A stretch of 63,774 bases of DNA, filler included, from Octopus bimaculoides (Eukaryota): assembly GCF_001194135.2 (NCBI RefSeq). It is 8 parts of 8 records of this genome, joined end to end, with 100 filler letters (N's around TTAATTAATTAA, not from the genome) between each part and the next. Parts side by side here need not be neighbours in the genome. Positions count along the whole stretch, not along the records: positions 1 to 6,136 come from NC_068981.1; 7 more parts are not named here. One strand, written 5' to 3'. A model generated the notes under the pieces. That model saw nothing but the letters and a program-made list of their open reading frames with translations, ran no database searches and was not told the origin of the DNA. Of the stretch, positions 1 through 6,136 are shown one piece after another. The first letter of the stretch is position 1. Every line of letters begins with the position of its first letter. The translations under genes and the position numbers were made by a program.

Positions 1-288
1 CGTATATATGTATATGCATATATATGTGTGTGTGTGTCTGTGTTTGTCCTCCCAACATTGTTTGACAACCGATGCTGGTGTGTTTACGTCCCCGTAACTT
101 AGCGGTTCGGCAATAGAGGCCGATAGAATAAGTACTAGGCTTACCAAGAATAAGTCCTGGGGTCGATTTGCTCGACTTAAAGGTGGTGCTCCAGCATGGC
201 CACAGTCAAATGACTGAAACAAGTAAAAGAGTATATGGTGCTCCAGCATGGCCGCAGTCAAATGACTGAAACAAAAGAATAAAAGAAT
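1..288 (+). mobile_element. SINE family A, 3' half after its internal (TA)/(TG) microsatellite, with a duplicated 3' tail
   Basis: Same sequence recurs reverse-complemented at 50200-50357, 53848-54018 and 31575-31760. Ends in GGTGCTCCAGCATGGCC..TGACTGAAACAAGTAAAAGA, present twice (185 and 237). Confidence 0.85.
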
Positions 289-1270
289 ATATATATATAT
301 ACACATATCCACAATTATATATATAAGTTTAATCAATGTAAATAATGCAATGTGTTTGAAATATATACTTTATTAAAATAAAGTGACTGGTTTAGATATG
401 TAATAACGTATCAGTTAAATAATAAGCTGTAAGTTGGTTTCAAAACATAATCCTAAATGCATTTTATGTGGAATCTCTTTGCCAATATTGATTACTTGTT
501 GGAATTTGAGCCACTTACATTGTGATATTCATAGCACTGCCTGAATAGCTTAACAGCTTCACCTGATTATATTCAAGTTGCCAAATTTGAATTGGAATTG
601 TTGGAGTTTTAAAATATTACTGTTTTAAAATAAGATTGTTTTTCATTTTGAAGAATGATCTTTCTTGCCATGCTATTATATATGGATCAAATACACAAAC
701 AAATTACTTGTATTATAAATATGTATTCTTGACTTCATATGTAGAATTTATCATTGCTGTTGTTGTTGATGTTATAGTTTAGCAAACCTATGATTGAAAG
801 GCCCTCCAGCCTTGACGATCATATCTTCTTTTTTTTTTTTTTTCTGATCTCAGTGTATGTAGGATCATATTACCCAATGTCTCCTCTTTTTCCTAAAGAA
901 AGTAGGGTGCAATTTGAGCCAGATTTGGCTATTATTTCCATTATTTTGGCTGATCACATAGAGGCTCACTCTGCAGTTGTGTTGGGCATCAAAATGCAAT
1001 ATAGAATTCTCAAGAAAATGTATCTGTAACTGAGTATCAGTTCTATCTTGAATATATTTTACTCATGATGCCAACGTAATTGGAGAAGACAAAAATTCAT
1101 AAATTCTGAAAATTACCGCTTGTCCACTCTCTCTCTCTCTCTCTCTCCCTCTCTTTCTCTCTCTCTCTCTCACTCTCTCTCTTTCTTTTTTTTTCTGGAA
1201 AAAAATATTGGTCATAGTCAGAAATGAAGAGGGATAGTATATGCCCAAGACACAGTGTATATGCACATGA

Positions 1271-1301
<31 letters not shown>

Positions 1302-2314
1302 TTGTTGGTCTTATCTCTTTTGAATTTGGTTCAAAGTAAACTTCTTTCCAATGTATTACAATACATGATACAGATGTAGAATTTTATATTTTCTTAAGAC
1401 TTTTCACCGTCTTTCTTTTGTCAGAGGAAGTTCATCATAAGAAGTCTTAAATAATCTCTGTGTGTTTGTGTCAGTGTGCATATAAATTTAAGAAACTATC
1501 TTTCTGATTCAAGTAAATACTTCTGATATATTTGTTATATGTGTATAATTATAAATACTGGAGTGTATATGAAAGAACTTTTTCTTGAGGTGTTAGAATT
1601 CCCTGGGTATTTTGTGTTAAGTAGCTGTTGCAATTATCATTTATCTGAATGTTGCTCTGTGTATGATGTGTAATCAACTTCATCGTATTCCTCTATGTTT
1701 ACTATTGTCTCTTGTTCATTATATCATGCTGTCCTTGAATCACAGTACCTTACAGAGACAACAGACATAACAGTTTCTTAACATTATCATTGATCAGGAA
1801 TTTGATCAATTAGTCAGTAAAGCTAATAATCAGAAAATAAAAATTAGATGTCAGTGAAAGATAATCTTAGTATTTGCAACTTAATCAACTGATCATCACC
1901 TGATAGACTTTATAATAAATCATAGCTTTTGTATTATATGTAATATATGTATATAGCTACTAATATCATCCACAAAAGTAAGACATGATTTTTCTTCATC
2001 TTCCATTAAATCAACAGTGCATCTTCTCTACAATAATCGTTTTGAATGAAAATTCATTTATCTTGTAGAAAGTTTCTTGGTCTCTGTGGTCAGATCTATA
2101 CCATAAGGTATGATATAAGCAAAAATGTAAAGTAATTATTTGTGTGTTCGTGGGAATGTTTGCTCTTCTATGCATGGGTTTACTTAGTTTATCTAAATAG
2201 TTTTCCTTTCTTTTAGATTAAGTTCTCAAAAGCAGCTTATTTCTCTAGATATTTAATATCTTTACTATTTATGTAGTGGCTAAAAATATTTTCATAAATT
2301 GGAATATATATATA

Positions 2315-2358
<44 letters not shown>

Positions 2359-3547
2359 AACCCTATATCACTGGGACCAAACATTTAATGTTGCTAATTG
2401 ATTAAATGAGAAACTTTCTGACATGTTTTAGTGTTGGATAAATTTAAATATGTCATATTTTTAATCTTTGCATTGTCTTGATTTAAACAGTAACTATTTA
2501 TAAGCAGGAATTTGAATAGAATTATCTAAATAATTACCAAATTTTTCAAACTAATGGAAATGTTTAAGAAAATTTAACTTCCTTTTTAGTATGTAATTAT
2601 CTTTAGTATTTTCATCAATTGAGTGCAATGTGTGTAGACAATTTTTTTAAAGATTTGCTTTACTTTTTCTGCTGGAATAGCTTTAATGTTGTATGTATAA
2701 CAAAGAAAACATAAGGCAGAAGTATAAATATGTTCTTTTAAAATCAGTACATTGCTTTATGTAAATAAAATTCTAGAAATGATTTTTAGCTAAAGTTGTA
2801 CACAATAAGTCACATGAAAATTTTAGCCTTTGTTTCAAACACTTAAGTTTTAAAGCTATCTCTTACCAGTGCTTAGCCTTAGGATTTCTGTTTACTTAAT
2901 TTCCCTCGTGATATTACAGCACATTGGTGACACAATGAATCTGTAATGTCCTTACAATAATAACCATGAAAATGACAGCATGGACAGAGGTTGGATGTTT
3001 GATGTTATAATTGTTCTCTAAAAATACAATGAACAAAAATATTAAACTCATGAATATATCATGTGTTGATTATTTCATTTTTTTTGCATTTATTTGGTTA
3101 AAATTTACCAAAATAACCCACTATCTAATGTATAATTATGTCAGTATTAGAGAAAAAGATTTTAACTTAATCATTTTTAAGTTTGTGTGTGACTCAGCTA
3201 ACAGCTTTTATATCACAATTTTTGAAATAAGCCTGTCTTTTTATTGGTTACTCCAAAACAATGGAACTATACTTATAATCTTTGCCAGACCTCTACATAG
3301 TGGTAAGAGACACATAGAACCTTATACTGTTGAACAGGTATATTTAGCATGTTAAGGAATGAAGAATCATTGTGAAAGGCTATCTACTTAACAGATAGTT
3401 TTTTTACAGTGGTCCAGAATGTGTGTATATGTATTTGGGGCATCAACCCAGTGTGACAAACTGCTCTGGAATGCAGAAAATGAAATTTAAACTTAGTTTC
3501 AGCAATTAAAATACTACAGTTCTATATTTAAGAGATAAGGAATTATG

Positions 3548-3751
3548 TACATTATTTACATTTGATGGATATTTGTCCTCATCCTGTTTGTTGTTAACAC
3601 AACGTTTCAGCTGATATACTCTCCAGCCTTCATCAGGTGGCTTGGGGAAATTTCGAACCTAGGTTCTTATTCCTAAGGTATTTTTTGATATCATTATTAT
3701 TATTATTATTATTATTCAGGTCACTGCCTGGAACTGAACTCAGAATCTTGG
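3548..3751 (-). mobile_element. SINE family C, inverted copy truncated within the tRNA head
   Basis: Reverse complement of 3790-3979 and homologous to 35208-35583. Stops at GAATCTTGG, so it lacks the A box. Confidence 0.9.
3596..3640 (-). ncRNA. Minimal type I hammerhead ribozyme fold in SINE C
   Basis: Minus strand reads CAC CUGAUGA A GGCUG-gagaguauau-CAGCU GAAA CGU U GUG: canonical core, stem II, palindromic ACGU in place of stem III, stem I CAC/GUG. Confidence 0.7.
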
Positions 3752-3979
3752 CATATGGCGTAGTGGTTAAGAGCGCAGGCTACTAACCCCAAGGTTCCGA
3801 GTTCGATTCCAGACAGTGACCTGAATAATAATAATAATAGCATTGAAAATACCTTAGAAATGAGAACCTAGGTTCGAAATTTCCCCAAGACACTTGATGA
3901 AGGCTGGAAGGTATATCAGCCGAAACGTGTTAACAACAAACGAGATGAAGACAAATATCGGTCAAATGTAAATAATGTA
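3750..3979 (+). mobile_element. SINE family C, near-full-length copy: tRNA head + (AAT)n + hammerhead-containing tail
   Basis: A box TGGCGTAGTGG at 3756-3766 and B box GAGTTCGATTCC at 3799-3810. AAGGTTCCGAGTTCGATTCC resembles the T-arm region of tRNA-Arg. No T4 run on the sense strand. Confidence 0.9.
3890..3931 (+). ncRNA. Damaged hammerhead fold in SINE C
   Basis: ACAC UUGAUGA A GGCUG-N10-CAGCC GAAA CGUGUU: C3U change and a 3-nt deletion after GAAACG relative to the other copies. Confidence 0.5.
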
Positions 3980-5440
3980 ATTAAAATACTCTTGACTGCT
4001 ATAATAATCTGCTGTATATAACATTACAAATACCTAAGCTGCAGACTTCAATTAATTAACATCCTATATTAGTATACATACATTCACACATTTTATTTAT
4101 TTTCTGTCTCTTTTGACTGAGATGTTACTATTTCTGGATTTTGTTTTGTGCATTAATTCACTGTGTCCAGTTCTATGTCCTATTGTGCCAATATTTTTTA
4201 ATTTCACAGAACATCATCTTAATTAAATGTTTTTGTTGAAACATTATGGAAATTGTTCAGATTTTGTTGTTGTTTTTCTTACAATTTCTACCAAATGTGT
4301 TATGTTGAAAGGTAGAGCTTTCAAATATGTAATTACTATAAAACGGTTCTCTTGAAATTTTGTTTCATCAAAGTTATGTGGAAAAGTTCTGTTACTTTCT
4401 GTATGCATGTCAGTGAATGTTTTTAAAATCTTTTACGAAAATGTAATAGAAACAAAATTTCAAAGAATCATAAATAAAATTTCATGAACTGTTGAACCTT
4501 TAAATTCTGTATTTGATGTTAGATACGCTTAAGTAAGGATCATTATTATAAATCCTCTCTTGTTATAGGAGAAGCTCACACTGATAAGGTTATAAATATA
4601 TGTATTTAGATCTGAGTTCCAGTTTCTATAATAAAACAATAAGTTTGAAGATTCAGTAGCCATGAGAATAGTAAATTGCTCATGATGTACATGTTTATTA
4701 ATTAGTTGGTTAATGACATTTGTTTAAATATCATACTATCAGAAATATGACACATTTAATGAACTAACCCCTTTTTTAAAATAGCAAAAGGAAATCTAGT
4801 TGAAAGAGGAAGGTCAAGGCGTAGTAGAATGGCAGACTGACTATTTTGCTGTATCTGATATAGTACATTGTCATTATCATCCTTTACAGCATCAGCTGAA
4901 AAGGTTGTCATGGATCAAGTTGGTTCTTCTTAAGTGAGTCAGAGATTGATGTCTCACTTGTGCATTTCATTTTTGGCATGTTGTCTGTAACTGGATGTCT
5001 TTCTCTATCATGAACCACTTTTCAGAGAGTATTACCCAGAATTTATCATAAAGAAGTTACTTTGTCTTCAGCAAAACTAAAGAATCTTCTCTATTCTATG
5101 TTGCCAGCACCAAACATTTACAAAAGTGATAACAAAGGATCAGAGCAAGAAGGTGATGGAAGAGAGAGTAATGGAAGAAAATGAGAGAGAGAAAATTGCA
5201 TGATGGTTGCATGATAGAAGTGTAAGTGATAGGATGGGTAATAGAAGGAGAATACTAGAAGTGAGAGATATGGAAGAAAAAGGTTAGTATTTTCTTCTAT
5301 TTTTAAAATGGAAGGGATTAATGTAACAAGGACTGGCTGTTATTTCTACTTGCTTAGAAATGCAGCACAAATTAACTTAATTCTGATACTAATAAAGACA
5401 AAATAAACAAGGCATGATGATTGATATGTTATAATTATTT

Positions 5441-5709
5441 TGTGGTGAGATGGAGGAAGAAGACAACAAGAAGCAAAAGGACAGAATGAAACGTTGGACC
5501 TTACCTTGCCGACCACAGCGGAGTACACGATCGCTCCTGATCAGAACACGTCTTTCTCGTAACGTTGCTGTTTTCTGACTGACTCCACGTGCTAGCCTTC
5601 GACCGCGTGTCGCCTACTTCCGATCTGACCCTTCCAGTCTGGCTTCACCTCTGTTTGCCTCACCCCTCTCCACCACAACACACAGCTCATCACAGCCCAT
5701 AACACCACA
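5441..5709 (-). mobile_element. 3' LTR (269 bp) of a Ty3/gypsy retrotransposon
   Basis: Bounded by a 7-bp terminal inverted repeat TGTGGTG (5441-5447) / CACCACA (5703-5709). Preceded on the minus strand by a purine-rich tract AGATCAGGGGGTCG (5710-5723) and by the end of the pol ORF. Confidence 0.8.
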
Positions 5710-5772
5710 CGACCCCCTGATCTATAGATCATTCTACCGGCTCTCCCACACACTCCTCGCTCCCGAACTACC

Positions 5773-6136
5773 TTAATTGGTCTCATAATCAGCCAACCAG
5801 GGAGGAGGGTACCGCTGCCTCTGTGGTCGCTGTGCGACCCCGGGACTGGCCTGAGTTCCTGGCGTGCTGCCTTCATCATCTTGCCTACTGCTGCTGTCTT
5901 CATCATCCTGCCCACTGCAGCTGGTTCCATCCTCTGAAGCACTGACAATCTTCCGCACATCCAAAACATGGCGTGGCATACCATCGACTAAGACGTTGTT
6001 CTTTGAATTGATGGAGGTTATAGTTCCTTTCCCCCATTGTGATGTGCACCGTGCATTTGGGGGTTTTACCCAAACTTCTTCCCCGTTCTGCACGAAGGTG
6101 TGCTCTTCTCCCCGGAGTCGCATTGATGCAATACAC
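5773..6136 (-). CDS. Ty3/gypsy pol C-terminus (integrase C-terminal region), cut off by a scaffold linker
   Basis: GEEVWVKPP..W.KG.I....VLVDGMPRHVLDVR and terminal RPQRQRYPPPWLADY are typical of gypsy pol ends. PPT and LTR follow directly. Confidence 0.8.

Follow-up and report, generated by a model that had tools for sequence, protein, structure and literature searches.

What copied a short, non-coding repeat of Octopus bimaculoides into its genome: the machinery of a long interspersed element (LINE) or that of a Penelope-like element (PLE)? Short interspersed elements (SINEs) are textbook parasites of LINEs. The question arises at a locus in the first part of a 63,774-nucleotide window of O. 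bimaculoides DNA (assembly GCF_001194135.2), the window being the whole stretch of eight joined parts. There, a SINE headed by a tRNA-type RNA polymerase III (Pol III) promoter carries in its tail a motif resembling the minimal hammerhead ribozymes (min-HHRs) of PLEs. We analyzed both strands of this part, window positions 1-6,136 (6,136 bp), hereafter the piece. In our reading, to which we assign a probability of roughly 55%, positions 3516-3979 would be the product of one old retrotransposition event, in which a non-autonomous octopus element of ~230 bp, headed by a Pol III promoter, was mobilized by PLE machinery. The case rests on a coincidence within one unit: a motif with PLE-specific details, its position in the tail of a promoter-headed repeat, and an insertion structure of the PLE type.

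BLAST and MAFFT resolved the locus into a ~230-nt repeat that is present twice, as copy 1 at 3548-3751 (minus strand) and as copy 2 at 3750-3979 (plus strand). The piece contains no other copies, the third copy and the head-only copy of the preliminary description being located outside it. These boundaries are exactly those of the preliminary description of the locus, which had recognized two copies of one repeat and an (AAT)n tract between head and tail, found here in both copies; that copy 1 lies on the minus strand, head to head with copy 2, and is 5'-truncated had gone unmentioned. Both 3' ends point outward, and the copies meet in a 2-nt GG overlap. In the inverted copy 1, ~39 nt are missing from the start of the head, and the truncated 5' end is fused to base 1 of copy 2. 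The element comprises three modules: a Pol III promoter head, the (AAT)n linker, and a 3' module of ~135 nt that includes the hammerhead. Over 189 aligned bases, the two copies share 88.9% identity; of their 21 differences, 17 are transitions, and several are attributable to CpG decay. Both copies are mutationally dead, with ~5-6% decay each, mostly by transition and in several places at CpG. Elsewhere in the piece, 13 nt at 335-347 (AATGTAAATAATG), just past the (TA)n tract of a different repeat, are identical to the SINE 3' terminus (E = 0.04); this is either a chance match or an extremely 5'-truncated SINE copy.

The hammerhead of copy 1 reads GCCAC-CUGAUGA-A-GGCUGG-AGAGUAUA-UCAGCU-GAAACGU-U-GUGUU. 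Its core (C3-U-G-A-N-G-A9, G12-A-A14, A15.1-U16.1 and H17) is complete, and the cut is predicted to follow U17 (minus strand, 3601/3600). The lesions of copy 1 are U11.1, produced by a CpG to TpG change that leaves a G10.1-U11.1 pair (C in copy 2), and one C-U mismatch in helix I. Copy 2 reads GACAC-UUGAUGA-A-GGCUGG...CAGCC-GAAAC---GUGUU, and its 3-nt deletion takes out 16.2, 16.1 and 17, i.e., the cleavage site. The lesions listed earlier are borne out and can be allotted: C11.1U belongs to copy 1, and C3U with the 3-nt deletion to copy 2. At every hammerhead position, the functional state is found in at least one of the two copies.

Both copies have an unpaired nucleotide between A9 and G10.1 (CUGAUGA-A-GGCUG), and the closing pair 10.1-11.1 is G-C in copy 2 and G-U in copy 1. 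Helix II has 6 bp (GGCUGG/UCAGCC), five of them Watson-Crick pairs and one G-U. Helix III is replaced in copy 1 by the palindrome ACGU (A15.1-C-G-U16.1), which is deleted in copy 2. Helix I of copy 1 has three contiguous pairs, the C-U mismatch and then a G-U pair; in copy 2, GACAC would pair with GUGUU over 5 bp. For the repaired 46-mer, the two-stem hammerhead fold had a computed energy of -12.0 kcal/mol, compared with -12.6 kcal/mol for the minimum free energy structure.

The piece was searched with a relaxed min-HHR descriptor. Besides the core, it allowed a bulge after A9 and an inserted palindrome of 0, 2 or 4 nt, and it required U16.1, H17, at least 3 bp in helix I, and at least 4 bp in helix II, closed by G10.1 and either C or U at 11.1. 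Only copy 1 matched in 6,136 bp, both strands included, against an expectation of 0.0003 per simulated sequence. Cervera and de la Pena (2014) described hallmarks of PLE min-HHRs that lie outside their own descriptor: a nucleotide interposed between 9 and 10.1, the G10.1-C11.1 pair, a palindrome at 15.2-16.2, and a 4-5-bp helix I (PMC4209133). Indeed, the first three are present in the octopus motif, and its helix I is short, so the motif qualifies as a PLE-type min-HHR, as had been proposed. The same authors reported pairs of min-HHRs on opposite strands, 100-700 bp apart (PMC4209133), and the two motifs of this locus, also on opposite strands, have that geometry.

In agreement with the preliminary description, the motif is in the sense orientation behind the Pol III promoter, with 48 nt between it and the 3' end. 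These 48 nt, beyond the predicted cleavage site, are retained in both copies, so their templates had not been cut at the ribozyme. A monomer is not expected to cut itself because only the ACGU palindrome replaces helix III, and published min-HHRs are inactive as monomers (PMC4209133). The hammerhead is most likely an inherited PLE module for recognition or dimerization, and not a means of processing transcripts of a single unit, with cleavage possible only in RNA dimers. In this connection, a perfect 12-nt palindrome, GAACCTAGGTTC, which overlaps TTCGAA and GAAATTTC, occurs upstream of the ribozyme motif at a distance of 13 nt (24 nt from the motif start). It sits within 27 nt that do not differ between the copies, despite an overall divergence of 11%. 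As a speculation, the palindrome may act as an RNA dimerization site or form a hairpin upstream of the hammerhead.

The position of the motif also bears on a retrozyme-like cycle, in which Pol III multimers would be cut by the hammerhead, circularized and reverse-transcribed, as proposed for Sm-alpha and for metazoan retrozymes without long terminal repeats (non-LTR retrozymes). Elements of the Sm-alpha type do combine a Pol III promoter with a hammerhead (PMC6765202), and non-LTR retrozymes are proposed to depend on PLEs. However, helix III is minimal rather than canonical, the locus has no head-to-tail tandem, and the copies run from the promoter head to a common 3' terminus, 48 nt past the cut site, and do not end at the ribozyme. 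The retrozyme alternative raised earlier therefore fails at this locus on the tandem and on the canonical helix III, and we consider such a cycle very unlikely.

At the other end of the element, the A and B boxes form a composite that occurs once in the piece; the strict pattern was found in none of 20,000 simulated sequences, and the relaxed pattern has an expectation of 0.001. The D-arm, the variable loop and T-loop-like stretches can be discerned by eye only, the acceptor, anticodon and T stems being unpaired. The boxes point to transcription of the unit by Pol III from an internal promoter. It is conceivable, if quite improbable, that there is no SINE here at all and that the repeat is part of something longer, for example the 3' end or pseudo-long terminal repeat (pLTR) of a PLE, autonomous or not, in which a tRNA-like stretch had been captured; what looks like the 5' end of copy 2 would then be simply a truncation point. 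The A box lies only 6 nt from that end, which is short for a Pol III start, and the third copy listed in the preliminary description spans 376 bp, more than the 230 bp of the unit. Furthermore, Cervera and de la Pena read most dispersed single min-HHRs as truncated PLEs (PMC4209133), and PLE insertions are heavily 5'-truncated (PMC8557442). Against a fragment, copy 2 starts at about tRNA position 2, as expected of a tRNA-derived SINE, and the spacing of the boxes is canonical. Moreover, no open reading frame (ORF) and no remnant of a reverse transcriptase (RT) or GIY-YIG nuclease lies near the unit, and the 6,136-bp piece contains no PLE ORF (RT, GIY-YIG).

The structure of the insertion provides evidence of a different kind. 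A 12-nt exact direct repeat (AATTAAAATACT) flanks the locus as a target-site duplication (TSD): among 684 control window pairs from the piece, none shared as many as 11 nt, and the shuffle test gave p = 0.0008. The TSD encloses a single unit, 3516-3979, consisting of a 32-bp extension, the inverted 5'-truncated copy and the full copy. The extension resembles neither the SINE nor any other part of the piece and has no counterpart at the right end; it may be a PLE-type 'tail' or a transduced 3' flank. Reading on from copy 1 in its own sense, the first T4 run is met at 3508-3511 (minus strand), inside the TSD and 32 nt past the SINE end.

We compared this structure with criteria for PLE-type insertions taken from Evgen'ev and Arkhipova (2005) and Craig et al. 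(2021). PLE insertions are frequently 5'-truncated and have TSDs of variable length (Craig et al. 2021, PMC8557442). They also show an inverted 5'-truncated copy adjoining the 5' end and an extension of 30-40 bp at one end (PMC8557442), and the combination of inverted 5'-truncated copy and one-sided extension is stated not to occur in target-primed reverse transcription (TPRT) by LINEs (PMC8557442). The octopus locus has an inverted 5'-truncated copy at the 5' end, a 32-bp one-sided extension and a 12-bp TSD. A partial head-to-tail tandem forming a pLTR was also looked for, and no direct repeat of the unit was found at the locus. On our analysis, the architecture, which the preliminary description had not noted, supports PLE mobilization independently of the hammerhead. 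The earlier expectation that PLE insertions lack TSDs was mistaken, since PLEs generate TSDs of variable length (PMC8557442).

Other routes to an inverted pair were considered. A nested insertion of one copy in the other was rejected, since the part of the head that copy 1 lacks does not reappear beyond copy 2. Classic twin priming, in the model of Ostertag and Kazazian, inverts a non-overlapping 5' segment of one RNA. Twin priming of this L1 type was rejected: both arms hold the same complete 3' end. An inverted duplication of a single SINE copy, made at the DNA level after insertion, would render the architecture uninformative on integration. In its favor, with no more than 89% identity between the arms, the event must be old and its details indistinct. 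Nevertheless, on either side the arms cease to be alike precisely at the element's 3' terminus, the truncation of one arm coincides with the start of the other, and the TSD encloses the whole unit. This makes a secondary duplication highly improbable, the least probable of the explanations considered.

A number of observations weigh against PLE mobilization of a tRNA-headed SINE. ARAGORN called no tRNA, from its default down to 70% thresholds, and the Rfam tRNA model had no match with the head alone as query. Because neither detects a cloverleaf, the 'tRNA head' is to be taken as a tRNA-type promoter and not as a tRNA fold; of the earlier claim, the promoter boxes and local tRNA-like stretches stand and the fold does not. 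Neither hammerhead copy is intact, and the motif has changed at the same rate as the rest of the element (5 substitutions in 46 nt). The Rfam models Hammerhead_1, Hammerhead_3, Hammerhead_II, HH9 and HH10 had no match at E<=10 in queries of 6,136, 481 and 66 nt; in our own reading, this is because the models include the helix III that min-HHRs lack. By extrapolation, the relaxed descriptor would give ~100 chance matches per 2.7-Gb genome, and the motif alone is therefore no proof in a genome the size of that of the octopus. The evidence comes from one locus with two dead copies, too few for stem covariation. Finally, the 32-bp extension could be Pol III read-through from the source locus, primed on an A-run of the target, a TSD of 11-12 bp also fits LINEs, and L2/CR1-type LINE partners have short-repeat ends similar to the terminus of the element, ...TGTAAATAATGTA(A).

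Several of these points lead to the main rival, an ordinary tRNA-SINE dependent on a LINE partner (CR1, L2 or RTE). The hammerhead would then be fortuitous or irrelevant, and the pair would reflect two SINE RNAs primed on the two strands of a LINE-made break. The TGTA(A)-like short-repeat terminus, as in L2-type partners, would suit this explanation, as would the length of the TSD, which agrees with LINE TPRT, and the silence of Rfam on the hammerhead. Across a transposable element library of several Mb, ~0.2 chance matches to the descriptor would be expected, an estimate by extrapolation. In addition, SINE tails are normally LINE-derived, and the octopus is rich in RTE, CR1, Dong-R4 and L1-Tx1 LINEs (PMC13282606, PMC8967140). 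This rival does not account for the additional PLE-specific features of the motif, nor for two arms with a complete 3' end, which classic twin priming would not yield. The inverted 5'-truncated copy with a one-sided extension of 30-40 bp is, as noted, stated to be absent from LINE TPRT (PMC8557442). Overall, we judge LINE mobilization unlikely, if less so than any other rival.

The anatomy of the locus, the motif statistics, the TSD and the architecture of the insertion are read directly from the DNA. From them, we infer Pol III transcription, a PLE origin of the tail, PLE machinery as the mobilizer, and the role of the ribozyme. PLE mobilization, first suggested on the strength of the tail, gains support from the PLE-type motif and from the TSD-flanked inverted pair, and has shed its retrozyme variant. 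The proposed event would have begun with transcription of the unit by Pol III from its internal promoter. The 3' module would mimic, or have been captured from, a PLE 3' end (the pLTR region), including the min-HHR. A PLE reverse transcriptase and GIY-YIG nuclease would then copy the SINE RNA into the genome by TPRT, with both nicked target strands priming on the 3' end of SINE RNA. The expected outcome would be a full copy joined through a 2-nt microhomology to an inverted 5'-truncated copy, with a 32-bp one-sided extension and a 12-bp TSD. We hold with moderate confidence that this Pol III-headed SINE was probably partnered with PLEs. The broader proposition, that octopus SINEs with a tRNA-derived Pol III head are mobilized by PLEs and not by LINEs, through a captured pLTR module with a min-HHR, is tentative, and we place it a little short of even odds. 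The features of the locus are listed in Table 1.

Table 1. Features of the octopus SINE locus, in window coordinates.
Feature	Position	Strand	Remark
SINE copy 1, inverted and 5'-truncated, 3' end complete	3548-3751	-	alignment and BLAST against copy 2
SINE copy 2, first base of tRNA-like head to AAATGTAAATAATGTA	3750-3979	+	alignment and BLAST against copy 1
A box TGGCGTAGTGG	3756-3766	+	perfect match; +7 of copy 2
B box AGTTCGATTCC	3800-3810	+	perfect match; +51 of copy 2, tRNA spacing
Pol III type-2 promoter (A and B boxes)	3756-3810	+	composite pattern
Decayed B box AGTTCAGTTCC	3730-3740	-	copy 1
(AAT)5 linker between head and 3' module	3824-3839	+	copy 2
(AAT)8 linker, equivalent place	3693-3716	-	copy 1
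Perfect 12-nt palindrome GAACCTAGGTTC	3864-3875 (copy 2), 3655-3666 (copy 1)		sequence
Near-intact minimal type I hammerhead	3596-3641	-	copy 1; sole relaxed-descriptor match in piece
CUGAUGA of copy 1 hammerhead	3630-3636	-	sequence
GAAACGUU of copy 1 hammerhead	3601-3608	-	sequence
Dead hammerhead remnant	3889-3931	+	copy 2; C3U and 3-nt deletion
3' tail of copy 1	3548-3595	-	copy alignment
48-nt 3' terminal tail, downstream of hammerhead	3932-3979	+	complete in both copies
Left TSD copy AATTAAAATACT	3504-3515		12-nt exact direct repeat
32-bp extension, left TSD copy to 3' end of inverted copy	3516-3547		at one insertion end only
Right TSD copy AATTAAAATACT	3979-3990		first base is last base of copy 2

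Relatives of the element were sought in several collections. A conserved 20-26-mer of the SINE, like the 3' end of the other octopus SINE in the piece, had no exact match in viral, metagenome and prokaryote-genome collections, from which no octopus DNA was reachable. A protein search with the antisense ORFs of the SINE, concatenated across frames, returned no match. Tail k-mers were absent from the octopus transcripts in the supplements of PMC9115989, and element sequence strings had no match in a full-text literature search. The pattern CTGATGAAGGCTG-N8-14-CAGCYGAAACGT retrieved nine eukaryotic-looking JGI/ENA metagenome contigs (L003-L011) representing two or three repeat families. These families, whose hosts are eukaryotic, carry CTGATGA-A-GGCTGC...GCAGCY-GAAACGT, the same strings as the octopus motif. 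The nine contigs had no helix I under the descriptor, and no tRNA, Rfam match or PLE ORF was found nearby. They may be divergent min-HHR families or artefacts of selection by the pattern, and were set aside as uninformative.

The piece as a whole consists of animal DNA that is rich in AT and contains microsatellites. Among these, long tracts of (CT)n, (TG)n/(TA)n and (TA)n at 1116-1195, 1270-1300 and 2300-2356 gave Rfam miRNA matches that were weak and spurious. Positions 50-290 hold an octopus interspersed repeat of another kind (CCCGTAACTTAGCGGTTCGGCAA...GGTGCTCCAGCATGGCCRCAGTCAAATGACTGAAACAAG), possibly the very abundant octopus SINE. The final ~39 nt of this repeat occur twice in direct tandem (184-222 and 236-274, 97% identical), and the repeat continues into a (TA)n tract; a template switch or a partial-tandem insertion could have produced the doubled 3' end. 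On the minus strand at 5773-6123, within a GC-rich block (5400-6136), a 116-aa ORF runs towards the edge of the piece and is 94% identical to the uncharacterized O. bimaculoides protein A0A0L8HD67, which by itself marks the host as an octopus. Distant homologs in sea slugs are named Pol polyprotein or integrase-domain protein. By similarity, the ORF is most likely the C-terminal end of an LTR-retrotransposon integrase, unrelated to the SINE. Two further contigs with more distant homologs of this ORF (L001 and L002) have nothing in common with the window.

If the PLE reading is true, this would be the first SINE-PLE partnership, and PLEs would become a third class of autonomous partner for SINEs; the searchable literature yielded no description of a Pol III-headed SINE dependent on a PLE. 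Part of the octopus-specific SINE expansion would then be PLE-driven. Some of the thousands of orphan or dispersed animal min-HHRs that are now written off as truncated PLEs would be explained as the tails of PLE-driven SINEs. The element would further provide a small, tractable template for studying how PLE reverse transcriptases recognize their RNA and how inverted and tandem PLE structures originate. Octopus genomes contain recently active Penelope elements in 30 families (PMC13282606; PMC8967140), while their SINEs make up ~11.6% of the genome and include 893 unclassified families (PMC13282606).

How the octopus element relates to known systems can be judged feature by feature. The min-HHRs of PLE pLTRs, reportedly treated by Lunse, Weinberg and Breaker in 2017, are the closest likeness to the motif. 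Both have the CUGANGA...GAAA core, one unpaired nucleotide between 9 and 10.1, G10.1-C11.1, and ACGU in place of helix III. Helix I, of ~5 bp in the PLE motifs and possibly in the octopus one, has no defined loop 1 in either, and both occur dispersed or as opposite-strand pairs a few hundred bp apart. The octopus motif differs in that it follows a tRNA-type Pol III promoter within a non-coding unit of 230 bp, and is not in the pLTR of an element encoding RT and GIY-YIG. Its helix II has 6 bp (five Watson-Crick pairs and a G-U) versus 7-8 bp in Schistosoma, and neither of the two copies is intact.

The SINE-like Sm-alpha and Sj-alpha elements of Schistosoma, reportedly described by Ferbeyre in 1998 and Laha in 2000, are likewise short non-coding retroposons with a Pol III promoter and a type I hammerhead on the sense strand. 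The comparison is one of features. The Schistosoma hammerhead is canonical and efficient, and its tandem repeats are processed from multimers (PMC6765202). In contrast, the octopus element has a min-HHR, no tandem at the locus, and ends that do not coincide with the cleavage site.

Metazoan non-LTR retrozymes are also non-coding, HHR-bearing and presumed to depend on PLEs, and they have been proposed as non-autonomous derivatives of PLEs (Cervera & de la Pena 2020; Li, Clavereau & Pollet 2026 preprint). They form head-to-tail tandems of 170-400 bp, contain type I HHRs, give rise to circular RNAs and have no internal Pol III promoter. No such tandem is present at the octopus locus. Non-autonomous PLEs, such as MRC1 of the Chlamys group in Chlamydomonas and Penelope of Heliconius, resemble the octopus element in being short, in sharing the PLE 3' end with autonomous elements and in forming complex insertions. 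However, those described are without a tRNA-derived Pol III head, and Chlamys and Naiad are mostly without HHRs.

Classical tRNA-SINEs with LINE tails, exemplified by the pair UnaSINE1/UnaL2, share the head-body-tail organization, the A and B boxes, the TSD and the 5' truncation. Unlike them, the octopus element has a PLE-type ribozyme in its tail, an inverted 5'-truncated twin and a one-sided extension. None of the compared systems combines a tRNA-type head with a PLE min-HHR tail, and by its sequence, the octopus element appears to be SINE-like and non-autonomous-PLE-like at once.

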